Part shown: one piece after another, positions 25,720 to 49,014 of the stretch
Position numbering within the stretch: position 1 is the stretch's first letter
Layout: each line of letters starts with the position of its first letter
From: Lepidodermella squamata
Lineage: Eukaryota; Animalia; Gastrotricha
DNA length: 64,000 nucleotides
Direction of reading: 5' to 3'
Assembly: GCA_047495785.1 (NCBI GenBank)
Contig: JBLDXI010000004.1
Location: 124,001 to 188,000 of the forward strand
The notes under the pieces: generated by a model
Told to the model about the DNA's origin: nothing
The model's input: only the letters and a program-made list of their open reading frames with translations
Databases searched by the model: none
Position numbers and translations under genes: made by a program

Positions 25720-25965
25720 TGTCCCATAAGTAAGGCACGCAAAGAAAATACACGGAAAAGGGCTCAGAAAATTTAAAATGCGAGGCGAAGTCACGCCTCG
25801 TGGCCAGAAAATTTTTAGAAAAATTCAAAATATCACACGTAATCAATTTTGCTTCACTCTAAGTGAGATTAAAAATTCCGGAGAAATTTGGCCCAACCCG
25901 GTAAAATACCGAAAATTACCGAACCAGTTACCATCGGGATTTTCCGGGATTTCTCCGGTAAATCT
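25720..25965 (+). repeat. Dispersed repeat family member
   Basis: The core ccggtaaaataccgaaaattaccgaaccagttaccatcgggattttccggg recurs inverted at ~36368-36640, ~41008-41270 and partially at ~56985-57045. Confidence 0.8.
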
Positions 25966-28900
25966 TTAATTTCTTCGGTTAAATCGCCGATAAAAGATGG
26001 AAATTCTCTCGGTAGGTTTAATTTAATAAAAGTAATGAATTTCCTACTAAAAGTTACAAAATTAAAGAATAGTTGCACAAATTCTGGGACACTCTGTATT
26101 TATCCACCTTAATATCGATTTCGTCGCCATAAAACATCATGAAATTGATATTTTCAAGCTTTCCTTATTGTTAAAATGGCTAATACAGGTTTTTGTACAT
26201 TTCAAATCGGCCGCCTCAGGGCGGAAAAGTGAGCCGCATGATGAGACTTGCGCTGAGCTAAAAATTAGGTAAAAACAGCGACTGGTCGAGGGTCGAGGGT
26301 CGAGACCATGATTCACCGTTTCACACCGTTTCCATAATATGGAGGTACAGCCATTGGCCGTGGCCCGTAATTTTGGGTTGGCGGAGTCTGGCGAAATTAA
26401 TTTCAAAATTAATCAGAAAATGTTCTTCTTCTTCTGGCTGTAGGTCATAGTCAAAAAAGCCGAAATAGCAACAATAAATCTGAAAAATTTGTTACCACGA
26501 AGCTGTAATTGAACGCTGATGCCTTCACTTGAGCGGCGTAAATATACATATTTAAACATATTTCCAGAGGTATTGTGTCTACTTAATTTTGGTACCGTTA
26601 ACACTGAAAATTGAGTTTCGGCAGCTAAAAATATAGAGCTATAGAAAAAGGTTGTATCTATTCAGACCCCCATCGGAATTCACTAAAATTCAAACGCTTT
26701 GAATTTTTTGTTGAATTTAGGGTTATGAAGTTTTCGAAAATTTAGGGAAAAATCGCATGGAACCGTGAAAAATGCAGCGTGGCATTGCGGGACTTTCCAT
26801 AGATATATCAAAAAAGTCAAATCAAGATAAAATCTATTGAAACTACCCGCACGTCGGCGGATGAAGGAATGCCTAATAAATGGTAAGAGCTGACTTTTCA
26901 CCTGAGTGGAAAGAAATTGAGGTTTTAAAATACGTGTAGTCCCAGTCTTTAAATTTCGCGTCGAAAATCTCACTCAGAAAAATCAGCACTGTTTGTGTGA
27001 CAAGCTGGCATTTACTGTCTTTGAGTTTAATTTAAAAGCGATTAAGAGTCACGTGACTAGTGTGGCTGTATTAATGACGCAACAATGAAGGCAGGAGCCC
27101 TTCTAAACGGGGGGTCGTGATTTTTTTTGGACTTTTGCTTAAATAGAGGTGATTTTCTCGGTCAGTTTGTAAAATTTTCGAATTTTGAACATATCCTAAG
27201 ATTCCTCTGCTCTTACATTATAATATCACTTAGAAATAGCTTTAGAATGAATTTTACCATTAAAATGCTGGCGGAAATACCTGTTATATATGCCCATTTT
27301 GAGGATTGTTCTGGTTGCTTGTTGACCATTGTTAAGCGATTTTAGGCGATTTTAACCGGATTTTCGAGCCATATATGGCTGCTAGCAGTCGTAGCAACCA
27401 GATTGTCGAGAAAAAACGGTTGCCGAAGCATTAAAACTGGCAGAAATCTAACTTTTAGGTAAGTGAAAAAGCAATAAAAACTGCCTTTTATACGCACAAA
27501 TTTGAAATTTGTGCGCAGCTTGTGTATTTTTTTATAATCCATGAGTGCGAAATTTCCACAATGCTTTTTCATCCGAGCATTTTTTTAAGGCGATTGTGTG
27601 GGGCAATTTTTGACAGATATTCATATTTAGAATTTGAAACTTATAGTTTCGCTTCAAATATCGAGCTTAATAATTATTATCACACAAATCAAGGATGGGT
27701 ATTTATATATAGATAAGTAACAAGTATTTCATATACCGCTTCATTTCATATATGTATTTCTGATTTAAATGGAATTTTTTTAGAAATTGTTTCTACATAA
27801 ATTCGATGATTTTAAAGATTTTTCGAGCAAATTTTTTTCTTCTATTATCCTTTCTTGAAGCGCCATCGATTAATTAATTCGGAGCGGTTGCAATTGCCGC
27901 CGGCGGTATTAAACATCATTCTCATTTTTTTTGAAATTTGCCATTTTATCGCAATTTTATTACAAAAATGTTGGACGCATTTTTCGCCATTCTCTCGCCA
28001 ATTTTCGCTATGGCATCCTGAACAGAAGAGAATTAGTGTGTAGGGTAGCTCGGTTGGCGTGCGTGACCTACTTCCGCCGTTTCGGTACGGTGTAATTAAG
28101 CGGGCTTTCGCTCGCCGTTTTATTACTGACCTACCAGAAAGCGGGTATATTCAACAGGTCTGCTTGATGTGCAGTATTGTGGACTTGTTATGTACGTTGC
28201 TTGTCTTCCTGATCCATCCTGAAATGTCCCCTTGCCACACAGTTTTCTCTTTTCTCAAAGTGTTATTAGGAATTTTTTTCTGCTGAGAAAATCAATGCAT
28301 TTTTAATGGTAATGTATTACTGTTGCGCTTATAGGTGATAAAACATCTTGGCTCTATGTGATACTGAAAACTGTTAATTTATCGACGGTTGCCGTTGAGT
28401 GAAAATTTGCTACCGCTATCGGACGCGGTCGCTGGATTTTTTATTGGTTAGTGCCGTATTTACTTTACTTTGACATGAATGACCTCACAGAAAATGGCCA
28501 ACTAATTATTTAATAATAATTATCGATTTGACCTTTCGTTGCTCGTCTTCTAAAATTAGGTGAATTTCACGTCACGGGCGGTGAATCTGGTCGAATGACC
28601 AACTCTTCGAACGTGGACTCGGGTTAAGGCTGGAGTTCAGAAATGTAACTTTTTATTTCGAATTCGGCCTGTTGATTGTTGTCATTTTTCGCCTCATTTA
28701 ATGAGCAACTCTCCGTATGCGTCCTCGTAACCCTTTAATTGTTGAGGGTCTGATTAATGGCCAATTAAAATGGCCGCCAAATATTCAGCCACCACGCCTT
28801 GTTAGCGTTTAACGCACAATACTTCAATTTTCTCGTTTTTGCTATCTAAAAGTGAAGATTTCGGATAATTTCGAATGAAGTATCCTTGGTTAAAATTCGC

Positions 28901-30099: not shown

Positions 30100-30462
30100 C
30101 ACTATAAAAAAAATTCGCAATTTAGCCGCTAAATAACCGACTTCTACTCGGGCATTTAGGACCCTGGGAGCCTCCTATTCAGCCTAAAAATTTCAGCTGA
30201 AGCTTCTAATTGCCGAAAAAGGAAATTCTATGCGATAAATTTCAAATTTTAGGAAAATAGTATGAAAAGGCGGGTTTGCTTGGTCATCTATTTTTGGACA
30301 CCCTAAACTCCATTTTCCCCTATGTTTTTCCCTATCTAAATTAATCCCCAATTATTCTAAATAGTTTTCTGGTATTTAGCATTCGAAATTGTTGTAATTT
30401 TGATTCTAAATAACCGGCCGTGCTAAATGCCAAGTGCTAAATAGCGAACTTTTTTTATAGTG
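30100..30462. mobile_element. MITE with CACTA termini
   Basis: cactataaaaaaaattcgcaatttagc / gctaaatagcgaacttttttttatagtg inverted repeat. The flanks tat/tac are an imperfect 3-bp TSD. Confidence 0.6.
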
Positions 30463-30991: not shown

Positions 30992-31473
30992 CATACGGGC
31001 GCCGTCGTTAACAAATTATTTTTACAAAATTTGTGTCATTTGAGACAATGGTCACCCCCCTTAAAAATCATTCTAGAACGCTGAAAACAGGTCTATATAG
31101 TCACATTTTGAGCCGCACATTTTGGTGAATTTTCCAGATTTTTATTTCAAGTCTAACTGGTCGAAAACTGGACCTAAATGACTTGAAAAAATTTTAATCG
31201 CCGAATTTTGAGTTGAAAATGTGATTTTCGGAATCAACGATTTTTTAACCCTAGAAATGAGTTGAAAATCACTTCGATTGGAAAATTTTCATTTTTTGCT
31301 AATTGCCGTTTACGGTTAGATAATTGAGAGATAAAACGGCAACCAGCGTGCAGAGCGTCATCGATTACCTACTGGGTTGTGTTATTTAATGCAAAATCGC
31401 AATTTTCAAGGGGGCAACCATTGTGTTGAAAATTTCTCAGTTTTTTTACTTTGTGAACGACGGCGCCCGTATG
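30992..31473. mobile_element. MITE
   Basis: 18-bp perfect TIR catacgggcgccgtcgtt / aacgacggcgcccgtatg plus a longer imperfect subterminal match. TSD not evident. Confidence 0.75.
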
Positions 31474-31559
31474 ACCCTAATTTCCGATTATGGAATTGTT
31501 AATATAATTCATGATAAATCGAAAATTAGAAAAATAATTATTGTAATATTTGGTGTGAT

Positions 31560-32206
31560 GAGTAACTATGCATTCTTGGAACCACATTTTACGAAAATTG
31601 ATCCCCCGTCTTGGCAAGAATCAGCGCGCTGGGCAAGTGGATTCCTAAATGTAAGCCCAATGGAGATGCTGAACTTCGTATAAATAAGTGGTTTTATTTT
31701 TCAGACCACGCGCCCTATTGTTAGGAAGGTTGTGAAAGAAGTAGAAAAGGAAACTAAAATTAGGGATACCAAACCTGTTGGCGATAGCGCTACAACGAAA
31801 CGGCGAAGTCCCACGCAACGTGTTGATGTACCAACTTCTAATTCCCATGTCTCGCCTAAGAGTACGGGATAATCCCAATATTAGGATTTTTTGATATATT
31901 CAAGAAAATTTATTTTTATTGTTAAAAGATCCGAGCTGTGGCAGCTCTTGCGCCCTTCATCAGCGGTTCTTAATAGCAAACGGTGATCTGTGGGTACCTG
32001 AAGACCCGAAAAGACCTAAACTTGTGCGAAAGGTCTGCAGGCGGTGCGTCGATGAAGGGGTAATAATTAAAAATTTGAGCAATAAGGATGCAAGATTCAA
32101 GGGAAAACAAACTCGTTTCTATTGTGGCCAATGTGAAGGCAAGCCGCCAATGTGCGATGAGCACTTCATTGAGCATCTGACGGGCTGGAGGTTGGCTCTG
32201 AATTGA
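31560..32206 (+). pseudogene. 3' exons of a piggyBac-like gene (C-terminal Cys-rich finger)
   Basis: RKVCRRC...KQTRFYCGQCEGKPPMCDEHFIEH matches the piggyBac transposase C-terminal CRD pattern. No DDD core is visible upstream, where MITEs intervene. Confidence 0.6.
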
Positions 32207-32418
32207 AACGAAATATTTTGAAAATGCGTATGACTTCTGTCATATCATTCTGTCATATACTTCTCTTCAGCTGTATTACTATTTGTCATTGCGAAAACGG
32301 TGAAATTAGTAATCTGGAACAAGAATTTACCTTCAATTAATCATAATTTTTCCAAACATTTTGTACCACGATATAGTATTTTATTTGCTGGTACTTTTCA
32401 ATTTAACCCGAACGCTGC

Positions 32419-33495
32419 ATGGCTGATATGGCTGATCCCTACGAGTTCGTTCCCGAAAATGCGTCGAACAAGGCTCTTGAAAGTGTGATACGATGCAATA
32501 ATTTGAAATTTCATGACTAATTTTGTCTTTTCTGCCAGAAATTCGCCAGTCTGGACTGAGCCCTGAAGAGTTGAAAGCTTCCTTACGCGCCAACAGGTCA
32601 AGTCCAACTCGGTTTCTTGGGGAGATGATGATAGCCGCCGCTCAGAAAACAGGCAATAGGTAAATTTATTGCGATGTAGCAGATTTTTTAGAGATACGTC
32701 CTAGATTTGCAAGAAAAATTCTTAAAAATTTGAAAAAATTAAAAAATCGAAACAAATCTGAAAAATGTTCAAAAACTTTTCAAAAATTTTATAGAATTAT
32801 TTTAAAATTATTCTAAAATTTTATTTAAAAATAAAAAAAATCGCAACAATGAAAGCCATCTACCGCAGTAAGAATTGTTGTCTGTTATTTGGTTAAATTG
32901 CGAGATTTAGAATTGAAACTTAATTTGGAAATTGTCCTCTATATTGCAACGTTTCTTCAAATTTCAGATTCGATAACCAGTATATGGCGAAAAATCCTGC
33001 CATTTTTTGCTCTGTGGCTACATACTTGTATGAAAACGTGGAGGAAGAAGAGCGGTTGAAAATAATTGCCAGGCAACTGAAAAAGTTACTCGTCCTCCGT
33101 CTGCCTCCTGGGAATAACAAAAGCGATAGCTGCCTTATTTCGGAGGCTGAATTTGACGCGGCGAACTTGATCGTAAGGGTCGACAAACGATCTGTTTCGG
33201 TTTCGGAACCGTTTTCGGCCAGGTCGACTCTAAGTGGTACCAAAGCGGTATCGGATTTGGGGTTTCGGACGCTGGCGACGGTTTCGCGCGAACTTCAGTA
33301 AAATTTAATTCATATATATTATGCCAGTTCTATTATTATTCTTGTTACAGTGACGATCCAAGAATGATGGTGGAAAATTGGTCAATCGTTCTGGCACTGG
33401 CGAGAATAGTTGCTCTCAAGTTCAGTCGAGGCACCCTGAGGCAGTTTTGCTTTGCTGAGATGCGTAGAATGGCTTCCAACATGTACGAAAAATAG
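32419..33495 (+). CDS. Orphan 4-exon gene, ~220 aa, unknown function
   Basis: Exons at about 32419-32482, 32539-32659, 32968-33297 and 33351-33495 splice in phase (1,2,2) into an uninterrupted MADMADPYEFVPENAS...AKNPAIFCSVATYLYEN...MRRMASNMYEK*. Confidence 0.55.
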
Positions 33496-34144
33496 ATTTT
33501 CTCTAATTAATGATCAAGCGAAACAATTTCTGGATATAACTGATTTATCGAAAGACATTTTAACATGATTGGATTAGAGTTTAGAGGGACGTAACTTAAC
33601 TTTGGCGTTTAAAAAATTTATGAAATTTAATTATCCCAAGTCTGCGGTTTCACATAGTTTGGTTAAATCGCTCGTTGTGCACATGATAATTCATCGCGAA
33701 ATTTGTGGGCAAATTTAATTTTCGAAATTTTGATACAAGAAATTTGCCGGCTGTGGGAAATGGTGCCCCAGCAACAGATGACTTTTCCTGTCACTACAAT
33801 TACCATTATTAATTGTAAAGTGAGGTGATACTATTGCTAAATACAAGACTCGCATGTATGTTTAGATGAATTAATTTCTGTAAAATTAAAATATTGAGCA
33901 ATTAATAAAGAAGGTATGGAATAATTTCTTGGCCATTTTTCTTGTGCGCTAGAAAGCAGCATGCTTGATAATTTCGATCAATATTTTACGATTTTATTTT
34001 ATGATTTTAAGAAAATTAAAAAAATTGAGAAAAATGCTGGTGAATTATGATAGATTTTTAGTAAAAAAATCGGAACTGATGTCAGACTCAGCTGTTAGCG
34101 AAATCAATTTTGAAATATCAATATTTTCATTTCTTAGAATCGCA

Positions 34145-35890
34145 ATGACGAGATTGGACCGTTTGATCTGCCTTGACCGCGAGTTTCTAAGCAACATGTT
34201 ACATCGGCCCTTTGTTTTGAATGTGCAAATACCTCCTTTGGCTAGACAAGTGTTGGAGAGCCGTAGAGATTATTGTTCGAAGAGCCGGCATTTATTGATG
34301 CTATCGAGGGTTTACCAAAATAAGGTGGAATTTCTGTTCACTGATGCCTGGAAACTCTTCGTTGATACTGTTGACGACCCCGAGAGTTGGATAAAGCCCC
34401 TATCTACCGATTTTTGTGAAATTCCATCTATCGATTTGCCGGAAATTCCAGCCTCTCAAAAGCCACGTTGTATCTCTCGCGTCGACGACGACCTATTTTT
34501 AGCAGGACTTTTCGAGGAATATTATGCTCCCGCAACAGCTGAAGTTGATAGGGAGGCTGATTCATATCTGGCCATTGAACCGCGCGATTCTTTGCCAATT
34601 GATTTGAATGCAAATATTCAACCTGAGGACACTTCGTCGTATACAATGAATCTAGGTGACCTAGAAATGCAAGCCCAAGTTTTGCATTCAGCCTCTAGCA
34701 TCATGGAATTGGATGATCTGGCGATTCCAGCCCCAGTTTCCTGTTCGGCCGTTGACTACGAGGACATTCAGTTGAGCGTTGCGGATTCTTCTCCCGATAT
34801 GGATATCGATGAACTGGCGATGGATTATGTTCCCGATATGGAAATCGATGAACTGGCGATGGATTTTGTTCCCGAAATCCTGGTTGAAAATGCCGAGGAT
34901 GCTCAAGGTGAGCCGAAAACGAAAAGACAGCCAGGCCAAGTTGCAATTGACGTAGAGACGGAAATCGACGATGATCCCAGTTTCCTCGAGAATTGCAACA
35001 CTGCGCCCATGACGCTAGCACCTCAATCTCGGCAGCTGATGAACGCAGCAGCTGTCTGCAATCTCGATCGGCTCATGGCAGGATGTAGTATTGACATCAG
35101 TCGTAACTTGAAGGACAGCCTTTTTCCAGGCTGGAAGGTGGTCAACCATGGACCCGGGTATTGGGACAAATTCTTCCGGTTACCGATGATTGACCGGGAT
35201 TTGTTGATTCACAGCATTAGATTTCCCCCAGGAGAAAAGTGTCCTTGTCCCCCTTTAGCTGAGGGTCACAGTTTCAATGTCCTCCCCATGGCAGAGAGGG
35301 TGGCTCGTTATGATCTCCTGAGCGATCAATTAGGGGAGAAATGTTGGTTCTCATCTCCAACTCTGGAACCCGCCATCGTCGAATCATCCATGCAGCCGTC
35401 CCGTTCTCCAATATCATCTCCAAGTTTGGAACCAGCCATCGCAGAACCCTCCATAAACCCGCCCTGTTCTCCGCTTTCCCCTCAAATTCCAGTACCAGCT
35501 GGAATTTCAGAGGCTCGCCAGGACTCTTTATTACCTCAGCCCATGAGCCCGCTCCAAGAGCCCGGAACCTCCGATGGACCACCGGCCGATTCGCGTGAGT
35601 CCCAACCCGCCAAATTGAGCCAGTCCGACGTTTTCTTGCTGTGCGAGACCAGCGAGTCTTTCGACGACCTGGTGTCAAGAAGTCTCTCATCAGCAGCCCT
35701 TCTTTTCAGCCAATTGCTGGGACTCGCGGCAAGAGGCGATATACAGCTGGTGCAGAAAACACCCGGCGCAATCGATTTTCGTTTGTTGCGGACAGTTGCG
35801 GAATCCGGTCCAAACAACTGCAGCTCTGAGGTATTCAATTTGGAAGATTACGTCGTGATTTGTAATAGGAAATACGATGCCTCAGACTGA
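34145..35890 (+). CDS. Divergent alpha-kleisin (Rad21/Rec8-like cohesin subunit)
   Basis: N-terminal LHRPFVLNVQIP...SRHLLMLSRVYQNKVEFLFTDA resembles Rad21_Rec8_N. C-terminal SFDDLVSRSLSSAALLFSQLLGLAARGDIQLVQKTPGAIDF resembles the Rad21_Rec8 winged helix. The linker is acidic and Pro-rich. Single long exon; a possible acceptor at 34137 may join an upstream exon. Confidence 0.75.
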   Translation: MTRLDRLICLDREFLSNMLHRPFVLNVQIPPLARQVLESRRDYCSKSRHLLMLSRVYQNKVEFLFTDAWKLFVDTVDDPESWIKPLSTDFCEIPSIDLPEIPASQKPRCISRVDDDLFLAGLFEEYYAPATAEVDREADSYLAIEPRDSLPIDLNANIQPEDTSSYTMNLGDLEMQAQVLHSASSIMELDDLAIPAPVSCSAVDYEDIQLSVADSSPDMDIDELAMDYVPDMEIDELAMDFVPEILVENAEDAQGEPKTKRQPGQVAIDVETEIDDDPSFLENCNTAPMTLAPQSRQLMNAAAVCNLDRLMAGCSIDISRNLKDSLFPGWKVVNHGPGYWDKFFRLPMIDRDLLIHSIRFPPGEKCPCPPLAEGHSFNVLPMAERVARYDLLSDQLGEKCWFSSPTLEPAIVESSMQPSRSPISSPSLEPAIAEPSINPPCSPLSPQIPVPAGISEARQDSLLPQPMSPLQEPGTSDGPPADSRESQPAKLSQSDVFLLCETSESFDDLVSRSLSSAALLFSQLLGLAARGDIQLVQKTPGAIDFRLLRTVAESGPNNCSSEVFNLEDYVVICNRKYDASD

Positions 35891-36755
35891 ACGTCGCTGA
35901 CCATTATTTGATAATTTATTTAAAAAAAAAACAATATAGGGAAAAGCGAAAATTTAATATTTTCGAGCTGTAGGCAACGCCCGTATTTTTTCCAATTTTT
36001 CAGAAAGTTTAAATAACCAGTTACCTAGTTTTCCTCAATGTTATTACATTTGAAGTTTCAAAGTAATGGAAATTCCTATCCTCCTCAAGTTTAGAAACCC
36101 GCAAAGTGTCACTGATGTATGAAAACTCGAAAATCATCTACCAATTGAAATAAAAATTCGACTTTAAGCGGATTGATTCTAAATAAATTTAATATCAAAT
36201 TGATCAAATTATTTCAGTCGAATTACAGCTTGTCGCTTAGGTTGCGCCACAATTTTTTAAATTTGTACCTTTTTGCAATAAATTTGATCAATTTTCGAGA
36301 TTGAAACTACATACTACCCGGAGAATCGCACATCCTTAACCCGCGATTTAATCGGAGAATATACACATTTACTGGCGAAAACTCGGAAAAGCATAACGGT
36401 AATTGGCTCGGTAATTTTTGGTATTTTACCCGGTTAGACCAAATCTCTTGGGACTTTTTTATCCCATTAACAAGTGGCATATTTGATTACTAATATCGTA
36501 TTTTTGGAATTATTTTCAAATATTTGTGAAATTTAAAAAAAAATCAGGGTCATGAGATGATGTGACATTGTCTCTCATTTTAGAGTTTCTTAACCCTTTT
36601 TCGTGTATTTTCTCTCCTTGCGTTACTTATGGCACAAATTGTATTGCTAATTTTATGAATTTTACTTATTATCGTGTAACCGCAGAGCGGTTTTTTTTAA
36701 ATGTTTCAAACTGAAATATGAGGAAATAATTCATTTCGTTAATGTCCAGTTTCAG

Positions 36756-37870
36756 TCATCATCACCTGTGTTGATACCTTCGAGTGATAGTTTGACCCCC
36801 ATTTCTTCATCTCCATTGGCTCAGGTTCCACATGGCGCTCCTGGTGGTTGTTTTAGTAGTGGTGGTCGTGGCAGCGATCGTCGTGGACGATCAATGTCTG
36901 TGATTTCTTCTGATGATAAGTCACTCAGAGTTACGACTCGGGATCAACAACGCGATCGAGATGGTTCGGCTAGGCCGCCGCCTCAGCCTACTACGACTCG
37001 TGGTCGAGGGCGCGGTACACCCAAGCCAGCAGCGGCTTTCTCTCAGCCTGATAAACCCAGTTCCAATCGGGGTCGGGGGCGTGGCACTCCTAAGTCAGCG
37101 GCGGCTTTCTCTCAGCCCGATAAACCGACTTCCACTCAGGGTCGAGGTCGCGGACGCGGCACTTCCAGCTCCACCAAGGCTTCGCCTCAGTCAGCTGAAA
37201 TTAACCGTGGGCGTGGACGTGGTCGAGGCCGTGGTCAAGTTCTTTTAGCGATGCCTTCGCCCCCGCTTTGCCCTGGCGATTCTGCCTCTGCCAAGCCATC
37301 GGCTCATGCAGATGAGCCGATGGACAGTTCCACCCGCGGTCGTGGACGTGGTGGACCTCGTTCGGTTACAACCCCGCCCGAACCTGCAACTCCTCAGCCA
37401 TTGGACGTTGCCAATCGTGGCCCAGGGCGTGGCCGGGGACGCGGTGGAGTCTTATCGCCTCCACATCCGCCACAACCTGGTGATACCAGCCCCACTCTGA
37501 GCCCAACTGCTATGTCTGATTATTCTGTGGCCGTAAATTTCTTAATTTCTTTCCTTTCCAATTACTTCTATTCATTGTTAAGGAGTCGTTTGAATTTGCT
37601 CCGGGCATTTTCGTCCACCACTTTCCACCATCGCCCGAGGACCCACCGGAATACGATGAGCCCCCAGACTACTCAACTATATGCTATCAATGCCAGCGCA
37701 CTCTCAAACCAGACGGAAATTGTGCGGCTTGCGGAATCTGTTTTGACTACGACCAAAATGCCTCCGCAAAAGACTTGCAACGCATGTCGCTGTTCGCGAA
37801 AGCTCAAAAGCGCAAAGCGGAGAGGCTCAGAGGGAAGAAGTTGATCGAGAATGAAAAGAAAGACGCCTAA
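36756..37870 (+). CDS. RG-rich low-complexity protein with C-terminal C4 zinc ribbon (at least 2 exons; start uncertain)
   Basis: Open frame with about 6 RGRGRG blocks. A phase-0 intron at ~37533-37581 joins an exon encoding ICYQCQRTLKPDGNCAACGIC and a basic tail, ending TAA at 37870. Confidence 0.55.
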
Positions 37871-38636
37871 TGTTATGAATCATGGATTATTAATTAATAA
37901 TCTCTCAGATTGAAATAATCAAACCTCAATAAATGAAGGTCGCTCTAAATCACGGGTAATAATTTAAAAATAATTACTAGTAAAAGCCGCAACTCCGAGC
38001 AGAGAACATAATAAAAAATTCTATTTGTGGGTTTTTTTCTATGATTAAAAACCATGGCAAGTTGGGTACATGTATATCACTAGCCTTTGGAATTCGAGAA
38101 ATAATGTTACCCCCCGCCAACATATGATGAACCTAAAACAGGTAACGTAACTCGCCCTAAATTTGGACACCCCAAATTTGGACACTTTATAAGCGTTAGC
38201 CCCGAATATCAATTCGTGCTGCATAACTGATAATATAAAAATTTCGGTGAAAAATAGCTTGATTAATGGACTTTCCAGCGGTACCAAATTTGCCAATACT
38301 TTCATATACTATCGATTTGCGAATAATCGCCGAAACTAGATCACTCAGAAAGAAAGTTAGGCTATTTTATTTCCATTTTTTTAGACGAAACCCTAATTTT
38401 TTTAATTAAAAAAGGTGTTTTGTCCAAAGTTGGGACCCGTTACGGTATTTGTTATCGAGAATGCGGAAAATAATATTCGTTCACGGCGGAAACTGCTGAA
38501 TCGGATGAACCTAAATTGCATCTAATCTTCAGACCATATGGGTATCGAACATTACATTTTTATTTGATTTCTCAAAAATTATTATCCAACTGCTAGACAC
38601 CGCTGAAAATAGTTGGTTAACAATTAATTTCAGCTC

Positions 38637-39138
38637 TCAATTTATTTGCATTCTTTGCAAGCGAAAAGTTAACACAAGCTCTCCCCAGTCAGGAGATATA
38701 TCGTCCTCCAGTCGCTTGAACCAAAGGGTTGCCGTTGGTCCCACTAATGTGGAATGTAGCCTCTCGTCATTTTCATTCAGCCCAATTAAGTGCTGAAGCT
38801 CAATTGTGCTTATTTGGAATCGGCGCCGTGATCTTATCTGGTTGAATCTGAATGAAATTTAAGGCTTAACCTTATCATTTCCAATTATAATAATTTATTA
38901 CTCACCGATCCTGAAGCGCTTCGAAACGAACACGGCTAATTGGGGCACGTTCCCGGCAGGTGACCACTGCCGTCGACCTTCTTCGCCGCTTCAGGTCGCG
39001 GAATACATAAGATCCAAGGGCGCGGAGCGGACCGTAGGCCGGACCGTTCCTCACCAATCGCCTTGCCTGCTTCGCTTGACGAAAGTTCACAGGCACATAA
39101 CGGTGCGGGCGCTTTGTTGGCCGACGACGCAATTTCAT
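38637..39138 (-). CDS. Orphan 2-exon Arg-rich basic protein
   Basis: MKLRRRPTKRPHRY...EALQDR, then a strong donor gtgagt (phase 2), acceptor ttcattcag, and FNQIRSRRRF...DWGELVLTFRLQRMQIN*. Head-to-head with the transposase gene. Confidence 0.45.
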
Positions 39139-39699
39139 AACCAAATTTGTTAGTGTAAAATGAAAAATATCTTCTTTCTTCAAATGGGTATGATTGCCAA
39201 TGTTCCCTCCGTTGCTGAACAGCCAGAATTTCTCAACTTCTAGTAATTTAATTGGAATTCTCATTATAAATAATTACAAAACGCAATAACTTTCTAATGA
39301 GTCCACTCGACGCACCATGCATCAAGCATGGATCCAATTAGTACAGTGATATAAAGTCCAAATAGCGACCAAGCATTGCTCATCTTTCCTAAAAATTTTA
39401 CTCGCTTTAGTGAATAAAATTTTTCATAATTATTTATTAATATTATTTTTAATTTTTATTTAATTTTTAAGCTGTCTGTCTCGTTGCCAATTATTTGTAC
39501 GTAATTACCTCCTCTGTTCCGAACTGTCGCAATCTGTCACTTTCGCCTAATTCTCTACATTTTTTCTAGTCTCAGCCATTTTATTATCTCTTAATCACGT
39601 TTTTGCCTACATCTTCGTTAATTTTCAGCCCATTTATTTCCCCCATTATTTTTTGTAATTTCTCTGGCTCTTTTGTCTAGTTTTTTCATTTAAAACAAT

Positions 39700-42600
39700 A
39701 TGGATCCTAGCGAAACAGAATCGGAGCCTACTACTAATGAACAGGTAATTTCAAGGATATATTTATTGATTAATTTAGAAATTTGGGTATTTATAGCAAT
39801 CTGCAGCGGTGAAGCCGAAGCGAGGCCGACCATCCAAACGACGACAAGTATCTAATGCTAAGAGTAATCGTTAGCTGTAAATGCTATGACTTTTTTTCCT
39901 ACAGACGACACACGAATCATCAAAACGCCGCAACACTATTGCCTCTTCGCAACCTTCGGTGAATGAACCTACGAATCGGGTGAGATTTCAGGAACATAAC
40001 ATCGGTTTTAAATTGGCCGATTTTTCTTGTTTTTTAGCCGCCGAAAGAATATGCCGACCTGTCAGCTTCCGGTCAGTGCAGGCGAAGAGCTGCCACGTTC
40101 TCTGACTTGGAAACGACCTTGAAGAAGCGATCCGTCCCAGGAGCAACCATAGCCTTGAACTTGCCGTTGAAAGGCGTTATGAAACCCTATGTGCGCACTT
40201 TCGGCAACGCATTAGGCTCAAAGTCTCCTCAAGCTTGTCAAGAGTTTGTTGTTTTTCTGCTCATTTCATTATACCATAATGTTTGGTTGATTTTCCCGAG
40301 TGAAGCAAGCGTTAAAAATATCTAGCATTTCTCGGAATTGTATACGAATCATATCAATGAATTAATTTAGGTCTGGCATTGGATTACATTCGGGCATGCG
40401 AATCCATGCCTAATCATAAATTAACTATGATGCTTCCGATTTTTCTAGGGTGATTTATTTTTTTTTTTATTTCCTGCTTATTTTGCACGATTTGAAAAAA
40501 ATTTCCTTTTTAATTTTATTTTTTCGCCAGATTTTTCGCCAAGTTCATACAAATCGGGGTTCCTCTGTAATTATTTCAGTTTTTGAAGACAACTGTTTGA
40601 CCTCGAATTCACATTTATCTTATCTACTTTCCTCTACCACATTACCTATTTATGTACTAAATATCTTTATTTGTTATTTCAATTTAGTATGGCGTATTTC
40701 CAAACTGCGAACAAAATATCGAGTCGGACTACAGAAAGCCTGCTTCCCAAGTTCCCCATCAATCGAGCCACCTTTAGGCAGGAGAGGAGAGGTCTGGCTG
40801 AGTCATTACCGCTACATCTAATCCAGCCTTACCCTGTAAGTTTATTTAATTAAAATCCCGCGCACAGGAAAATAATCCCAAAAGTTGCGCTACTATTTTT
40901 AATTTGGCAACTTTTTGTTGGAAATTCAAATATTTTTTTTAAATTGTACCTACCGACAGAAAAGTCCGACTTTTATCTGATTTATCCGATTTAACCGAAT
41001 AAATTAGAAATTTACCAGAGAAAACCCGGAAAATCCCGATGGTAACTGGTTCGGTAATTTTCGGTAGTTTACCCCGTTGGACAAAATTCTCTAGACTTTT
41101 ATGATCCTTTTAACAACTGGCATACTTGATTACCATTGTAGTAATTTTTTAATTTTTCTAAATATTTTTTGGCCGTTAGATGTGAATTGGTCTCTCATTT
41201 TACAGTTATTTATGTGTATTTCCCTTTCCTGTGTATTTTCTTTGCTTGCGTTACTTATTGGACACGCTGCATTTATTGGGACAGCAAATTGCGGCTTTTC
41301 TTCTTCTGATAGATAAAAGCTGGCGATATTTCAATTATGTCTTAATTATTTTATTGGAAATTTTTTATTTACAACTTTTCATTCAATGTTTTAACTAAGG
41401 CATGGTATTTGAATTTCAAAGAATAAGAAGGAATGAATTCTAATGTTTGCGGCAAGTTAACAGAGCTGGCTAGCATGCTGGCAAGATGGTTGGCAAATTT
41501 TATGTACTCAGTTATCCGAAAAGTAGTATTTCGAGAGTTAGAGCACCAGTTGTCGTTTGACCTCAATGACCTTGCCACATCCCGAATTCCTTACTCAGCT
41601 CAGTTTTGCGATAGAAATTCATGAAACCTGCGGCTTCTTGAATGATTTTATTGATCAGCGGGCGGGCGGGTGGATAGTAGTAGTTTTCCACTCCGACGAC
41701 CTCCGTACCAAACGAGTGGTTGCTGTGTCGTGATAAAATCCAAAGGCCAAGTATCTCGGCTGGTCTCGCCTATTCGTCTGCGTTTCGCTTCCAGGCAGTC
41801 GTTCATAGATTTCGGCTTGGATTTCGTTTAAGTTCAAAGCTCGATTTTCGGCTTGGATGGGGACTTCGTTCGTGTTATTGTTGGGAATACAGACGGCCAG
41901 ATTTGAAGCAGCTCAAAATATGAGTCCTACGGCGAGCCTTGTCGAAAATTTAACTTCAAACCCTGTCACAATAACTCTGTTTGTTTAGTTTGTTCGGGTT
42001 AATTTACTATATATTGTTAAACATGCTGTCAATCTCGATGACTGAATTTGCGTGGCGTGTCGAACACGGCATCTCCCTTGAGAACGAAGATTTTGAACAA
42101 ATTCGCGACTTATTTCTCTACGGCCCGTCCAGCTTCATCGATGAAAGATACCTGTTGCCACATCAAACAGGGTTTCTACAATTTGCCTTTAAATTCATCG
42201 ATGAAGATGACGAGGTACGCGACGACGGGTCAAGTCTCGTCCGCGCAATTTTCTCTGTGAGCGGTGCCCAAGCTGCCATCCCAGCAACTGACCGTCGGCA
42301 CGGGCTTATCCTGGCTATGATTGAATTTTGCAAACCTGACATCAGTTTGGAGGAAAAATTAGTACTATTTCATTTCTTCATCAAGAGGTTTGCTCAATGC
42401 GGCTGTCGAGTGGAGGAGAGCGCATTTCAAAGCCATGACTCGTCCTTAATACTGAACAATCCCCTTCTCAGGCCTTTTATATTAGAAATTGCCAACAACT
42501 ATGGCGGTATATTATTGAAGCGGCCTATGTTATCGTTAATGTCTATCGCACGCCGAGTTGTGTTAAACCGATTACGGCTGGGGCTGGATCAGCGCTCAGA

Positions 42601-45600
42601 AGACATATCTGCCTTAGAATTACCGGAATGCTTGATGCGCTACTTACAGTATAATGACCTTTAATTACATAAATATTGAAGAGAGAAGTGTTGTAGAAGA
42701 ATAAAAAGACAAATGAGCCGTCATTTAACCTTGTGTAATTGCTGAGAAATTATATCATATTTTAATGAAACTATACCCGTGATCGGGAATAGCATTTAGA
42801 CAGCGTGTTTATTTGAGGATCTATTGGGTGTTTAAAATTGTGGTTTTGGAGTTCAATTTTGGGACTGAATACCTTTTTTCTTGCGATTTCGAGCAAATTT
42901 AAGAATTTCTCGTTTGGTGTTTAAAAATTAAATTGTTAAACTGCCTAAAAACACGGATTTAGAAATCATTTTTTTTCCAATTTTTAGAGAACGAAGGAGG
43001 TTGATGGCAAACAGGTGATGATCAAGAATAATCAAACGGGTGGGTGTTGTCGCGACTTCATTGACGTCCTGTATGTCTTGGTTGGGCTACATTCGTTGCA
43101 ATCACATCACCCTCACGAGCTGCGTCTCTGTTTCGACAACACGCCAGCAAGACAACAAGGCCAGCCGATGGAGCGCATGAACGTCACCCTCGTGGAAAAG
43201 AAAACCAGTCCCACCACTAGTGACGAAGTGGCAATTGGTTTATTTTTGGACGAGGAAGGCCGTGGAGAACTAGCGCACTATTACGGAAAAGTCTTCGAAC
43301 AGGTTTAATTTATTATTCGAATCGATTAATGGACCAAATATATTAAAAAGAATTCGCGCCTGAATTTGAATCCCCGACGGCCGACCTGTTTTTTTCAAGC
43401 AAGTGGTCGCAGAACCTTTTAGCGTGGATCTCATATTTCTCCGATTTTTTAAATTTGACAAATTTCAGAACTAATTATTTTTTCGCATTGGAAAATATTT
43501 TAATCATTTTTAATTAGAAATTCTGTCCGAAATTATAAAATCGGAGTTTTTTGTGGAATATTTTGCTGAGTTGCTGAGGGTTGCGAGAATTGAAATGGCT
43601 CTGGTTATTCAGTTGACCGTTAAGCCTCGCATCGAGCGCGGTTCATTTCGCCTCACTTCCATGCAAAAATTACCAACTGTTTCTTTCCAATAATTTTTCC
43701 AATAATTCAGAAATGTCCTCTAACCCCACTGACTTTTCCATCTTCCTTTCTTTTTTTTCATCTATGTAAACCCGCCATTTAATTCCATGAAAAAATTCTG
43801 ATTTTCTAATGCTCGAATTTCCCGTTTAAATCAAAATAGATTTGCCTCTACTATTGAGCTATTTTCAAATAATAATCCATGTATTTTTTTCAAGAATTTT
43901 ACCAATCAATATACCTGAGAATTTATTGTAATATTTTTTATATTTGTTTAAAGATCATCGCGGTTGATGAGAACGGCGTGAAAATCTGGGGCGAAACGTT
44001 TCACTTTCGATTTCTACTATGTGTGGATGTCATGGCTGCCATTGTACTCCTTGGTGCTGGGTCACCTGTGGGCGACTACATCTGCCCCATATGCGTGAAA
44101 CGAGCCGATGACCCTACTCCTGGGCGGCGAGAATACCGTAACTATCGCGATTTGTCAAATCTGAGGAAGTTGATCGGCTTCACCGTGGCTGGGCGCACGC
44201 CCGCAGGGAAAAAGTCGACAAAAAAAGCAATTGTCGACGTCAATGCGCAAGGCCTCGGCCACACTGAACTGCCGCTGCTCCCCATTGAGGCTGCCAATAT
44301 CATCCCAGACTCGCTCCATTTCAACGCTAGATACTCCGAGACGCTGATAAAAGTGGTAAAATAGTTCTCTCTTTGTGTAATACTTTGTTTTTCGTTTGCT
44401 AAATTGCTTTGATAAGGCTATGAATTTATCACTTTCTCTCGCCATTTATAGCCAGTGTGGCAGATGAATTACTGAATGAATTCCCGAAAAACGGTATTTC
44501 GCCCTCTTTAATTGAAATTCATGAGATATTATTTCATTGAGATAGGAATATCGTTGAAAAATTCTAGGTTATTTTCATTATTTGTATTCACCCTTATTAT
44601 TTTTCACAAGCCCTGCTATCAGCGGAACCAAATTGCCGCCTGATAATTGACCTCAAGCTGAATTAAATTGCGACCAATTATGTTGCTTGAAGTTATTGTG
44701 TTATTTTCAGAATTTTTCAAAATAATGTGTTTGAATCTTTTGGTTCCGGGTAAATTTTTACGTTGGACTCTTAGTTACACATAAATTTGGGTCCCTAAAA
44801 TTATTCCATTTTTTCAACAAATTTTTTTTTAATATTATTATAATTAGTGATTTCCGCTATTTAACTCTTTTCCCAGACAATTACCATCCTGTATGACGGC
44901 AATCTGATGGACACGGCGAAGACCATTATGGAAACGCTCAGTGGTGTTACGAAAAACGCCGTGAAAATTAAAGTGACGGCCAAAGGCGCGCAATTCACGT
45001 CTTGCAGCGTTGACATTGTCATGCCCACTCACGACGATGCCGCTAATGCCTTTCTCCTTAGCCATTACCTTATCATCACGGAGCCGAGACCTCTGCTGAC
45101 CAGGGCCCAAGTTGTCCGAGCACATTTCAGCAAATGCGACACATCGATCCTCAGACGTCAGTACACACAAATCATGAAGACCTCGAAGAAATCTGTGGCT
45201 GCGATTCAAAATGTGGCGAAAGCAACAAGCGACCAATTTGTCGAGAAATTCGTCGAATTCGATGCTGCTGGTGTTGCTTATGAAGATAGGAAGGAAGTTG
45301 AAAAGCGCGTGACAGATCTGCATACCTTGGATGAAATTACGCGAGTTTTCCGGTCGATACTGCGCTTTTTTAAAAATAAGAGATCTGTTCCAAGGCCGCG
45401 TGAGGAAGAGTTCCACAAACTGGAGGACCTTATGTTCACCCTGAAGCAGCGGCACACTACCTACAGTCACTGTAAATTAACGGCTTTCTTGTTTATCTTT
45501 GCGATTGATTTTTTATTTAACTTTATTACAGATGCCGGGTCCCATTTCTTCGACGCCACTGAAAAGTGGGACATTCTCGCCCTTAACACAGTCGCCATCG

Positions 45601-45806
45601 AGCGTGGGCACAAATCGGCGAAGACTGAGCGCGACAACACAACCTGTCCCACGAGCGGCTGCAGTGTGGCCAAGCAACTCATGGAAAAGGAGAACATCAG
45701 ACTTCATGAAGTTATTCATACGGCCGGGATGGACATCGAATGGCGTTTTGACGACGATTCCAGTTGTAATGTCAGACGGCCATTTCTCGTTGGCATCAAT
45801 CAGTGA
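39700..45806 (+). mobile_element. Intron-rich Transib/RAG1/Chapaev-type DDE transposase gene (possibly decaying)
   Basis: In-phase exons 39700-39744, 39797-39847, 39905-39979, 40038-40243, 40688-40835, 42988-43302, 43954-44355, [44356-44876 unresolved], 44877-45471 and 45532-45806. Motifs: AT-hook KRGRP; PKEYADLSASGQCRRR (NBD-like); LCFD; LCVD; YICPIC; PLLPI..IIPDSLH; spliced YSHYAGSH (HxxxxH); AIERGHK. Confidence 0.75.
42023..42664 (+). CDS. SOCS-box protein, intronless, nested in a transposase intron
   Basis: C-terminal PMLSLMSIARRVVLNRL...ISALELPECLMRYLQY is a canonical BC-box plus cullin-box. AATAAA at ~42699. Confidence 0.8.
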   Translation: MLSISMTEFAWRVEHGISLENEDFEQIRDLFLYGPSSFIDERYLLPHQTGFLQFAFKFIDEDDEVRDDGSSLVRAIFSVSGAQAAIPATDRRHGLILAMIEFCKPDISLEEKLVLFHFFIKRFAQCGCRVEESAFQSHDSSLILNNPLLRPFILEIANNYGGILLKRPMLSLMSIARRVVLNRLRLGLDQRSEDISALELPECLMRYLQYNDL

Positions 45807-47609
45807 CCTAACGGTAATTATTTCCTCTGTCTTTCTGCCTCTTGACCTTTCAAATATTAAATATTGAATTTATTTTCAATTTTATTTATTTATTTTTTTA
45901 ATTTGAAAATTTTCCCAGTTTTCAAAAATTTTGGAATTACCTTGATTTTTTATTTTTTATTTTCAAAATCTGATATACATGATTCACAAGACATTCTTCT
46001 GGCGGGTCGAGAAAATATCCAATTTTCAATAATCAGTTTCTCCTAATAATTTGGGGATTTTTTATTTCTATTCAGTATTAATTGAAATTTAGCCAATGAA
46101 CCCCGATCTTGTTTTCCTCGTTTGCCTCGTTGTTTTTCCTACCCTTTGGGATGAATTAGTCAAATATTAAGTCGTAATCATTTTCTGGCCATTGTCTCAT
46201 CACGTGGAAATTGGCTGCCAGCTAGGCACGTCTCTACATCGCGATTTCACTCGATTTCACCCCGTTGGGTCATATTTTAACCCAGAGCTTTTAGATATTT
46301 CAACACGTTAAATTTCTTCAATTTAACGTAAAATTGCTTGTTTGACGGCGCGAGTTTGTCGGCTCATTTTGCGGTTGAAGTCGCCAATCTCAGACTTTCT
46401 TTCATGCGGAAAGTCGGAAAGTTATCGCAACATTTTCGCGGATGGGGGCGAATTTAGGGATGATGGCTAGCTTGATGGTTAGCTCAGGGTACGAATGTTT
46501 TTGACAGTCCGACAGGTCCGTCCGAAGAATTTCGAAAATCGCATTGAATCCTCGTTTTTTCGTGACCCTTAACACTTGCTGATCCAGACTTTCCGCTAAT
46601 TGGTCAATAGCTTTTTTCAATTTTAATATATCCAAAATAGATTGGGGCCGCTTTGAATGGGCATTTGTTCTACAAAAATCGCAGTTTTTCAGCTCAACTT
46701 TGAGGAGTGTCCATAATTTCCTACTTTGGAACCCTGTTTAGGAATTATGAAGGAAGTTTTAGACTTTGAGGAGAGTCATTATATTTTCGACGTTTAAGTC
46801 CAGTTTGAATAATGCGAAATGTTATCATCGATTTTCAAGCCTGTTCTCCTGAAAAAGGGCTTTTTCAGCGTTTCCTCGAATTTTCCGGTGATTTCAGTCT
46901 GCATCTCGACCAATTATGAACGTCTCAATGAGCAAGGAGTCTAATTTTAGTCTGGTTGTAGTATTTCGATCAGTGTGAAGCATGAAGCTTGAACGAATTC
47001 AAGCAGAATTTTCAAGCCCCTATATTTGCGAGACTTTCGTTCACTTTGAAGTTTGAACCTTCCTTTACTCTGGACAATTATATTATGGGAGTTAAATTAG
47101 AAAAATCGCAGTAAAAGTCTTTCCGAAAGGATTCTCGAAATCGAAAAATTATTGAAAATTTATTTGTACGAAAATCGTAATATTTTTTCACTATAAATGT
47201 TAAAATTCCACCTTAATATTTCGTTAAAACAAATCGATCATTTTCCTTTTATTTCCTCATGTTAGTCCTTCCACGCGCCGAAAACGATTCCATTAGCTGC
47301 AATATTCGATCCAATTCCTCAACTTCAACAAACGCTGTCTATGCCTAGCTCTGAAACTCAGTCGCCGAATCTCATCAGCCCAATCGATCGCAGTCAACGT
47401 TCATGCGTGTTTCATCGACTGCCTTTGTCAATGGCGATTATGTCAGGCCAGTATTGTCCTCTCGTGTTCTCGTACAACTTGTCATCCTTCCAAACTCGCG
47501 ATCTTGATTGCCTGCTTTTTAAAATAAGATGCTATCTATTTTCACGATTGATCGCAATAATTGCCTTTTTTCGAGCATTTTATTACGGCTTTTCAAATTC
47601 GAGTGATGC

Positions 47610-47730
47610 CTTCTACAGTACGCGTGACAGATACGGAAAACTCGCGTAATTTCATCCGAGGTATGCAGATCTGTCACGGGTTTTTCCAACTTCTTTCCTA
47701 TCTTCATAAGCAACGCATTTGTTGATTTCG
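47610..47730 (-). repeat. Inverted degenerate fragment of the transposase exon at ~45275-45360
   Basis: The reverse complement reads cttatgaagataggaaagaagttgg...gtgacagatctgcatacctcggatgaaattacgcgagttttcc, matching 45277-45352. Confidence 0.85.
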
Positions 47731-49014
47731 CCCCGTTTACACTGGCAGAGGATTGATTTGTTTGAACTATTGACGTTAGATGACCTAGCTGGCGCATTAA
47801 CCGAAGTAACCGAAGTATGAAGTATCTAAAATGTCTTTATCACATCTGATGAGCTTGTGTTCCTCATGAGTGACCTGTGATCAAAAGTGTTATATCAGTT
47901 TACTTTTACTTCTTTCCTCATCTCGGAATTGTTTACTCTACTTTAAAGATTACCTACTCAGTACTTCTTCGACTCTTCGCTTTCAGCTAGAAACTATTCA
48001 GCGGAGACATTGATGTCATTCAAGCTTATTTCATACCATATTGTATTACTACAACCAGCTAACAGTAATAGACTTGTTCTTTCAATCTGGACCTGTTTTT
48101 TCAGCTGCTTGTCGTCTATACCTCACCAATACTGTGAACATTTCTTGAGTTTAGTTGAGGTGAATGTCAGTAGGCCATATTATCTAATGCATTATTTATA
48201 CAATCATTATCTGTCGATTCTTTGTTCGCAAAGTCAATAAATGGATGTGAACAAAACAGAACTTGTAATCATTTCTTTTTCACCATCTTCAATGATGCAA
48301 TGCAACTACGGATGATAATGGAAGGGATAATTTGTTTACTCTTGAGTAACAATACCGCATGTTTCACAGATACTTGTTTCACAGAAGTTTTAAGATTGAG
48401 GAAGGCATATTGAGGCGTGCTGAACTTGGCTGGCTGTTTAAACAATTTGAGGATGCTCAGGAGTAGGATCGTACACCTCTAACACGGATAAATCGGCCGA
48501 TAACGAACAGGAAACGTACAAGTCCAGTTTAATCAACCTCAGGTTAGCCACTCTCACGCCTCAGCACGAGCAAGCGCGAGGCGACGCGAGACTACAACAG
48601 CTGATAAACAATTCCAATCGCCATAGAAACTCTAAATTTAATTATTTTCTTTATGAAATTAATAATAACTTTCATTAAATAATTTATTTACAACAAATAA
48701 TTAAGAAATAATTGATTTTGCCGCAGAATCCCGTTCCGCTTGGTTGAAAACGGCCACGCAAAGTTGGCGTCACTATGATAAAATTCGCTTTTAATAAAAT
48801 TATTAGAACAGGCGGCGCGGGTATAGCCCATGCGCTATTACTCCACTCATTGATTTTTCCAAAGCTCTAATCCCAACTCTGAGCATGAAGCTATTCGTTG
48901 CGCCAATAGCTACAATAATATCAATAGTGGCATTGAGCTATGATGCTCAAACTTTGCCTACCCACGTAAACAGCCACTTGCAGAAGAATGGACGCAAAAA
49001 CATTGGCGTTACCT

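Follow-up and report, generated by a model that had tools for sequence, protein, structure and literature searches.

A candidate 25.4-kb transposon of the CMCT clade carrying kleisin-type and SOCS-box genes between two C-type lectin genes of Lepidodermella squamata

Introduction

Cut-and-paste transposons of eukaryotes usually encode only a transposase, accompanied by at most one helper gene. The CACTA/Mirage/Chapaev/Transib (CMCT) clade, whose members are EnSpm/CACTA, Mirage, Chapaev, Transib, Plavaka and ESTA as well as Lanisha, has CA..TG termini and target-site duplications (TSDs) of 2-5 bp, and D/D/CxxC/Hx4H/E-type motifs mark the clade as a whole (PMC12730594). A TET/JBP dioxygenase gene is found in several fungal DNA transposons, among them KDZ, Plavaka, EnSpm and ESTA (PMC12730594), and very large cut-and-paste elements of the same broad group, with several ORFs and a 3-bp duplication, were described in 2013, as far as the citing account relates (PMC6431247).

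Here we analyze a locus within a 64,000-nucleotide stretch of the L. squamata genome (contig JBLDXI010000004.1, hereafter the window; all positions refer to it). An initial sequence-only reading had placed a candidate giant RAG1/Transib-like transposon with chromatin and ubiquitin-ligase cargo at 31500-46000. We lean, with reservations, towards the interpretation that positions 23356-48777 form one 25.4-kb CMCT-clade cut-and-paste transposon that carries kleisin-type and SOCS-box genes.

Results

The locus is flanked by lectin_C genes at 19953-22633 (+) and 50480-52270 (+), and no lectin-like sequence was found between them, in line with the original description of an unrelated gene block separating lectin paralogues. 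The interval between these two genes (A-C) measures 27.8 kb, 25.4 kb of which is occupied by the candidate element, and the neighboring C-D interval measures 2.8 kb. No Rfam families were detected in 20-52 kb. The gene models given below are predictions based on open reading frames, splice junctions and motifs; in the left 8 kb of the candidate element no gene is recognizable.

The block is bracketed by a pair of terminal inverted repeats (TIRs). The left arm, CATAGTGCCGCCGGCATTGCGTGG (23356-23379, +), and the right arm, reverse complement CATAGTGACGCCAACTTTGCGTGG (48754-48777, -), match at 20 of 24 positions (4 mismatches) and bound 25,422 bp, with the dinucleotide AT on the outer side of each (23354-23355 and 48778-48779) as the two copies of a 2-bp TSD. 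The outer tips thus read CATAG..CTATG with AT on both sides, and they adjoin the edges of the non-lectin block. Within the window the arms are reciprocal-best and unique best partners, the next best match reaching 16/24. Among 200 block-shuffled windows, 4 (2%) produced a comparable pair, defined as a CA..TG pair of at least 20/24 that brackets the transposase and has a duplication of 2-5 bp. The outer TIR is short and imperfect, a 2-bp duplication taken alone is weak evidence, and neither subterminal repeats nor longer similarity was found between the two ends or with the nested miniature element (MITE) described next. This 482-bp MITE (30992-31473) has tips CATACGGGCGCCGTCGTT (23/24) and a 2-bp duplication AC. 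The motif CATAnnGnCGCC is common to its tips and the outer tips and has exactly four exact matches in the window, which make two correctly oriented pairs; judged by their sequence, the tips of the MITE and of the large element are closely related.

The two ends, at 23356 and 48777, lie outside the span originally assigned to the transposon. For that span the sequence-only reading had itself reported no termini, and our TIR scans agree: seeded and unseeded comparisons of three left regions with 45.8-48.8 kb returned AT-rich chance matches only. Our scans turned up no CAC-tipped pair flanked by a duplication of 3-5 bp. A 9-bp direct repeat, TGTACGAAA, at 33482 and 47165 beside AT-rich inverted ends (15/20) was rejected as chance because an equally good meaningless match exists in the window and because 9 bp misfits the transposase type.

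The predicted transposase gene (39700-45806, +) comprises seven exons (39700-39744, 39797-39847, 39905-39979, 40038-40247, 42988-43305, 43954-44355 and 44877-45806, all +) and encodes a CMCT-clade protein of 676 aa with an AT-hook at its N-terminal end. All junctions are GT-AG and in phase 0; exon 4 (ending at 40247) and exon 5 are presumed to be joined, and a possible GA|GT donor at 40243 together with an acceptor at 41988 would offer exon 4 an alternative connection to the SOCS exon. Three of its six introns are long (521-2740 nt), compared with about 50 nt for other introns of the genome, and the 2.7-kb intron hosts the SOCS-box gene. The spliced product contains D177, D258, C277xxC280, H560x4H565 and E609, a correspondence at motif level only. 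Atlas look-alikes of the exons are Plavaka, Transposase_21 and RAG1 modules: exon 6, which holds the second D and the CxxC, scored 0.96-0.98 with Plavaka/EnSpm vs 0.92 with RAG1, and exon 7 resembled clusters with RAG1_ZnH2, RAG1_RNase_H and RAG1_ZnC2 at 0.88-0.92. Sequence searches gave no counterpart. Exon 7 had no phmmer homologue among 1.84 billion representatives, two exons had no phmmer match in the PDB, no exon matched a RAG1 family in Pfam hmmscan even at E up to 10, and Pfam, PDB and phmmer returned no known CMCT member for the transposase. The AF2 single-sequence model of exon 7 (pLDDT 39.7) was too poor for a fold search. Downstream, at 47634-47714 (-), lies an 81-bp inverted patch that is 94% identical to part of exon 7 (45273-45352).

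Within the bracketed region we also identified an intronless gene for a divergent Rad21/Rec8-like kleisin of 581 aa (34145-35890, +), which holds internal 39-nt and 63-nt repeats. Its sole Pfam matches stand in the correct N-to-C order and are both below cut-off: Rad21_Rec8_N over residues 1-152 (12.9 bits, E=0.12, cut-off 23.1) and Rad21_Rec8 over the last 99 residues (12.7 bits, E=0.081, cut-off 22.7). In the Atlas, all 30 of the 30 nearest clusters were Rad21/Rec8 (0.95, 202-207 shared features), and these clusters give the protein an overall family resemblance to alpha-kleisins, in which a long disordered linker connects two end domains. The AF2 single-sequence model was too poor for a fold search (pLDDT 34.5), and the helix-helix-hairpin that it places at the C-terminal end reaches a pLDDT of only ~50. 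No sequence homologues of the kleisin were found, including by phmmer against the PDB, and an exact-protein look-up gave no record for the kleisin or for the DUF7869 ORF. An apparent second kleisin fragment at 28.9 kb was dismissed as a chance match.

The SOCS-box gene (42023-42664, +) is a single exon encoding 213 aa. Pfam SOCS_box (PF07525) matches residues 184-223 of the 227-aa ORF translation with 25.2 bits, above the cut-off of 23.5, which places a C-terminal SOCS box (BC box and Cul box) in this ORF. No second Pfam domain was detected that could serve as an upstream substrate-binding domain (SH2, ankyrin, SPRY or WD40), and no sequence homologues of the protein were found. A gene with RG repeats and a CxxC..CxxC zinc ribbon (36894-37870, +) consists of two exons (36894-37532 and 37583-37870) separated by a 50-nt GT-AG intron. 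Of the gene list of the sequence-only reading, the kleisin, the RG/zinc-ribbon gene, the SOCS-box gene and the transposase gained support. The small Cys/His finger ORF (31919-32206, +) is only weakly like a piggyBac C-terminal finger (zf-Tnp_2, E=0.31, below cut-off), and no piggyBac DDE_Tnp_1_7 catalytic domain was found upstream of it or nearby. The two remaining entries were not upheld: the orphan ORF (32984-33301, +) is unsupported, its opposite strand being open as well, the Arg-rich ORF (38902-39264, -) is unproven as a gene, and neither has a match of any kind. RAG2-like (kelch/PHD) domains were absent from the ORFs scanned between the tips.

Besides the MITE, several repeats are nested in the block. 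Copies of a high-copy repeat of ~400 bp lie at 25715-26101 (-) and at 36221-36636 (+), the latter with a summed depth above 8000, and another copy of this repeat (40876-41269, +) sits inside the 2.7-kb transposase intron. A CACTA-tipped inverted-repeat element with 27-nt arms (93%) occupies 30100-30462, and a multicopy repeat with 33-nt inverted arms occupies 38137-38453.

Copy number was assessed with a 6-kb query (34101-40100) that covers the kleisin, the RG gene, the Arg-rich ORF and the 5' end of the transposase. The DNA reads of run X1 showed no second copy at ≥80% identity, a test that covers diverged copies and, with no depth baseline outside the element, is compatible with identical ones; runs X2 and X3 gave nothing. 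The element is probably low-copy or stranded, since no diverged second copy was seen. For the same reason, co-occurrence of these genes at other loci, which the sequence-only reading had named as a check, was not demonstrated. That reading had also taken genes that are single-copy and syntenic in relatives as evidence against mobility, and the single-copy half of this applies to the 6-kb part at the identity used. An empty site was not found: the paralogous lectin D-E interval, which is mirrored, loses similarity before the insertion point. Reconstructed, the empty site is the left flank ending AATTTAAT joined directly to AAAATTCGC.

Discussion

The element most likely belongs to the broad CMCT group and not specifically to Transib/RAG1, because it combines CA..TG tips, a 2-bp duplication and exons whose look-alikes are Plavaka/EnSpm, with RAG1 weaker. 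The motif set, the CA..TG TIRs and the 2-bp duplication of the clade are all present, and transposase type and ends agree because CMCT elements have CA..TG termini and 2-5 bp TSDs (PMC12730594). The label RAG1/Transib proved too narrow, given CATAG..CTATG tips with 2 bp, no RAG1 match in Pfam or the PDB, and an exon 6 nearest to Plavaka/EnSpm. That the locus is a true Transib/ProtoRAG element, with a RAG1-lineage transposase, CAC heptamer-like ends and a 5-bp duplication, is in our estimation highly improbable. Such an origin would explain why the D..D(19 residues)CxxC spacing equals what we take to be that from D708 to C727 in RAG1, why an E follows the Hx4H, and why exon 7 has RAG1 modules among its look-alikes. 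However, the same motif set defines the entire CMCT clade (PMC12730594), exon 6 is nearer to Plavaka/EnSpm than to RAG1, and the family and structure matches, CAC-tipped ends flanked by a duplication of 3-5 bp and a RAG2-like, kelch or PHD gene that this origin would lead one to expect were all absent from our searches.

Two further explanations dispense with a single large element, against which it counts that just a single copy, with a single pair of ends, has come to light. Independent insertions (an element with transposase and SOCS-box gene, one bearing the kleisin, MITEs and others) may have piled up between the lectin genes. In that case the intervening genes would never have moved together, and the CATAG tips on the outside would stem from an older shell element or from two partial elements unrelated to each other. 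Insertions do accumulate at the site, where at least six small repeats lie nested, and an isolated transposase piece lies inverted 2.3 kb downstream. Yet neither the kleisin nor the transposase nor any subset of the genes is enclosed by an inner TIR pair with a duplication, no further copy of the inner genes covered by the 6-kb query appeared at ≥80% identity, and the outer arms are mutual best matches with a matching duplication; we regard such a nest as unlikely. Alternatively, the block could be an ordinary island of fast-evolving host genes with a domesticated or stranded transposase, the 20/24 match being due to chance or to two solo ends. Animal genomes commonly contain kleisins and SOCS-box genes specific to a lineage, no diverged copy was seen for any tested gene, intact ORFs are what host selection would leave, and shuffling alone produces such a pair in 2% of windows. 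Against this stand tips that fit a family signature common to a clear MITE, that are of the kind expected for such a transposase and that sit directly at the borders of the non-lectin block, as well as proteins with no detectable homologue among billions, which is unusual for conserved host genes; we consider a host island quite unlikely.

The single-element interpretation keeps the core of the original proposal, one large cargo-carrying element, in that a TIR pair with a 2-bp duplication brackets the block; co-occurrence of the genes elsewhere was not seen for the 6-kb part covered. Because one copy was seen, it is the ends by themselves that speak for movement as a unit. We infer that the two ends are a true pair, that they are the substrate of the transposase and that the cargo was already aboard at the move. 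The long intact ORFs (581 aa for the kleisin and 676 aa for the transposase model) argue against old dead DNA. In the proposed scenario, the element would have entered the region between two C-type lectin genes at an AT dinucleotide. The DDE transposase encoded by its own intron-bearing gene would bind the CATAG..CTATG ends and excise the element, re-insertion would use a 2-bp staggered cut, and everything between the ends, including complete kleisin-like, RG/zinc-ribbon and SOCS-box genes, would travel along. Small MITEs would have landed inside the element later.

We further speculate, as an idea to which we give little credence so far, that a CMCT lineage keeps accessory genes that manipulate the host, namely a kleisin of the cohesin type and a SOCS-box adaptor of the Cul5 type, both aboard the 25-kb copy. 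If so, SMC complexes might be acted on by the kleisin, and a host repressor might be directed to degradation by the SOCS-box protein, each in the interest of the transposon; the cargo would then touch chromosome architecture and protein turnover. In a literature search we came across no publication reporting a kleisin gene within a TIR transposon. If the ends are real, they and the 676-aa transposase constitute a concrete testable substrate; if they are not, what is left is still a locus where orphan and rapidly evolving genes of kleisin, SOCS-box and transposase-derived type cluster.

Compared with known systems, the locus shares with the CMCT clade its CATAG..CTATG tips, AT duplication, C277xxC280 and H560x4H565. 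Its placement is at the level of the clade. It differs in having no sequence-level match to a catalogued member and in a transposase gene with six introns, one of which hosts another gene. The catalytic and zinc motif set and the language-model look-alikes of exon 7, which include RAG1 modules, recall Transib, ProtoRAG and RAG1, whereas the 2-bp instead of 5-bp duplication, the CATAG tips in place of CAC heptamer-like ones, and the lack of a RAG2-like partner and of a Pfam RAG1 match set it apart. Like the multi-ORF giants of 2013, as they are characterized in PMC6431247, it is a very large, multi-ORF, cut-and-paste element of the same broad group; measured against that account it is distinguished by its 25.4 kb, its animal-like small-intron genome, a 2-bp vs 3-bp duplication, and an ORF content of kleisin, SOCS box and RG/zinc ribbon. 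The fungal TET/JBP transposons are likewise TIR elements, some of them CMCT, with a complete chromatin-related accessory gene beside the transposase. Their cargo is a DNA-demethylation enzyme found in many copies and families, whereas here it is a kleisin plus an E3-adaptor-like gene in one known copy; if real, the element would be an animal counterpart of these transposons and of virus-encoded Cul5 adaptors. Pack-MULEs and the gene-capturing CACTA elements of plants (PMC6431247) also carry host-derived sequence between TIRs and move by cut-and-paste, but they hold mostly gene fragments, whereas the kleisin and SOCS-box frames described here look complete.

Results

The window is eukaryotic DNA of about 40% G+C with small introns. 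The proposed 25,422-bp element (the block) lies between two plus-strand C-type lectin genes, A (19953-22633) and C (50480-52270). The sequence-only reading had placed the gene run within it between lectin paralogues, which holds: lectin genes flank the block, and similarity to them is absent across 22.7-50.4 kb. The A-C interval spans 27.8 kb, of which the element would make up 25.4 kb, and the adjacent C-D interval 2.8 kb. The cluster is mirror-like: A resembles E (about 61.7-63.9 kb) and C resembles D (55043-57477), D and E being minus-strand, mirror-image copies in inverted order with 67-75% DNA identity. No paralogous empty site was found in the mirrored D-E interval. Two of the lectin paralogues have between them an intact ORF of 602 aa (58874-60682) that contains a DUF7869 domain (E=2.8e-16) and is possibly another mobile-element gene.

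The sequence-only reading had proposed a giant RAG1/Transib-like cargo transposon at 31500-46000 and reported no termini, and our scans for terminal inverted repeats (TIRs) likewise found no convincing ends in or near that interval. In a wider scan of the window, CATAGTGCCGCCGGCATTGCGTGG at 23356-23379 matched the complement of 48754-48777 at 20 of 24 positions, and this inverted pair is bordered by AT on either side. The two tips are reciprocal best partners window-wide (next best, 16/24), and of all the window's CATA..TATG pairs, true repeats alone reach this score. Nested in the proposed element is a 482-bp MITE (30992-31473; tips CATACGGGCGCCGTCGTT, 23/24; 2-bp duplication AC), and the tips of the two are related, with CATAnnGnCGCC in common. 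The latter occurs without mismatch exactly four times in the window (0.27 expected), as two pairs in the correct orientation, a descriptive count and no independent test, as the motif was drawn from those same four tips. No subterminal repeats were found at the element ends. A 9-bp direct repeat, TGTACGAAA (33482-33490 and 47165-47173), beside AT-rich inverted ends matching at 15 of 20 positions and 13.7 kb apart, was attributed to chance: the window contains another pair that is just as good yet meaningless.

The predicted plus-strand transposase gene (39700-40247 and 42988-45806) has seven exons encoding 676 aa, with all junctions GT-AG and phase 0. Its product contains an AT-hook (KPKRGRPSKRR) near the N-end and the motifs D177 (LCFDNTP), D258 (LLCVDVM), C277xxC280, exactly 19 residues past D258, H560x4H565 and E609 (AIERGHK). 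No homologues were found in Pfam or PDB, or when phmmer was run exhaustively against 1.84 billion representatives. By language-model likeness, exon 6 (43954-44355) resembles Plavaka and Transposase_21 (EnSpm) at 0.96-0.98 and RAG1 modules at 0.92, and exon 7 (44877-45806) resembles unnamed eukaryotic clusters, clusters with RAG1_ZnH2, RAG1_RNase_H or RAG1_ZnC2, and Plavaka. Judged at motif level, the predicted protein is an enzyme of the CMCT clade (CACTA/EnSpm, Mirage, Chapaev, Transib and kin). The "RAG1-like" label is too narrow for it; the signs point to the clade and not to RAG1/Transib in particular. Three of its introns measure about 52-58 nt and the others 2740, 648 and 521 nt; the longest contains the SOCS-box gene as well as one copy of a MITE, and we infer the exon join across it. 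A candidate in-frame alternative splice (GA|GT donor 40243 to acceptor 41988) would place the AT-hook exons 1-4 onto the SOCS-box exon in place of the transposase core. An 81-bp patch of the last exon (45273-45352) is repeated inverted 2.3 kb downstream (47634-47714; 94% identity) with almost no similarity around it. Gene conversion, filler DNA or the remains of a second copy might each account for it.

Three of the proposed cargo genes, all on the plus strand, gained support. The kleisin-like ORF (34145-35890; 581 aa) had no sequence homologue in a word-indexed search of 5.8 billion proteins or in PDB. Its first 152 residues gave Rad21_Rec8_N (E=0.12) and its last 99 Rad21_Rec8 (E=0.081) as sole Pfam matches, both under the cut-off, yet the expected family pair in the expected order; all 30 of the closest protein clusters in the Atlas were likewise Rad21/Rec8 (score 0.95, 202-207 shared features). 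We accept the predicted product as a very divergent alpha-kleisin. The RG-repeat gene (36894-37870) is interrupted by a clean 50-nt phase-0 intron and encodes a CxxC..CxxC ribbon at its C-terminus. The nested SOCS-box ORF (42023-42664) passes Pfam's own threshold, with no second domain in Pfam and no homologues in the protein search. The piggyBac-like finger (31919-32206, plus strand) fared worse, matching at E=0.31 only with no catalytic domain nearby, and the orphan and Arg-rich ORFs found no support as genes. The kleisin and RG genes contain tandem repeats, all in frame, with units of 39, 63 and 69 nt (34792-34875, 35351-35472, 36998-37153). Alleles differ in the repeat region, as a contig from sequencing run X1 is 3 nt shorter at 35502 and shows further differences at 35713 and 40010.

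Other repeats include a high-copy family of about 400 bp (25715-26101, 36221-36636, 40876-41269, 56882-57043; copies 70-77% alike), whose summed X1 contig depth exceeds 8000, where unique DNA has about 250. The RG gene is separated from the Arg-rich ORF by a further multicopy element (38137-38453), which measures about 317 bp and has inverted arms of 33 nt, and a CACTA-tipped inverted-repeat element (30100-30462; 27-nt arms, 93%) has no clean duplication at these coordinates. No Rfam families were found in 20-52 kb.

Copy number was assessed by comparing contigs of three runs, X1 (95% of words), X2 and X3, with 34101-40100 at 80% likeness. In X1, the kleisin and RG genes, the Arg-rich ORF and the 5' end of the transposase gene are covered by single contigs that show 0-1 differences, and X2 and X3 match only the repeats at 36301-36700 and 38101-38500 or short AT-rich bits; hence these runs contain no diverged second copy (80-99%) of those genes within 34101-40100. 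The two repeats are the only multicopy parts of this interval, with summed X1 depth in the thousands. Over the kleisin, the RG gene, the Arg-rich ORF and the transposase 5' end depth is flat (228-300). All these contigs fall within the proposed element, and for want of a depth baseline outside it identical copies may exist beside this apparently single copy.

Discussion

We lean, by a modest margin over even odds, towards the block being one large CMCT-type cut-and-paste element. It would have inserted at AT between two lectin genes, bringing along a transposase of its own together with several additional complete genes, and MITEs would have landed in it afterwards. That the block is instead a nest of separate insertions within an older shell element seems unlikely. 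Slightly less probable again is a host gene island in which a transposase has been domesticated and an inverted match arose by chance; under a rule set beforehand (a CA..TG pair of at least 20/24, bracketing the transposase, with a 2-5 bp duplication), 4 of 200 block-shuffled windows produced such a pair. A true Transib/ProtoRAG element is very improbable: scans for a CAC-tipped pair with a duplication, for RAG1 matches in Pfam and PDB and for a RAG2-like gene among the ORFs between the tips found none, and Transib makes a 5-bp target-site duplication, which the 2 bp seen here do not fit.

If the block is one large element, its cargo invites speculation. Some viral proteins recruit Elongin B/C-Cullin 5 to degrade host factors, and by analogy the SOCS-box protein might do the same to a host factor, while the transposon-borne kleisin might engage host SMC rings. 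In our literature search we found no published case of a TIR transposon that carries a kleisin gene; the sole paper combining kleisin, transposase and terminal inverted repeats concerned condensin assisting PiggyMac. Kleisin and SOCS-box cargo together in one, apparently single-copy, element would be notable if the element reading is true. The CA..TG tips and 2-bp duplication fit the range stated for the CMCT clade, members of which are among the fungal transposons that carry TET/JBP genes (PMC12730594). Enlarged En/Spm families of 16-20 kb with 4-5 ORFs are reported from a red alga in work cited by PMC6431247.
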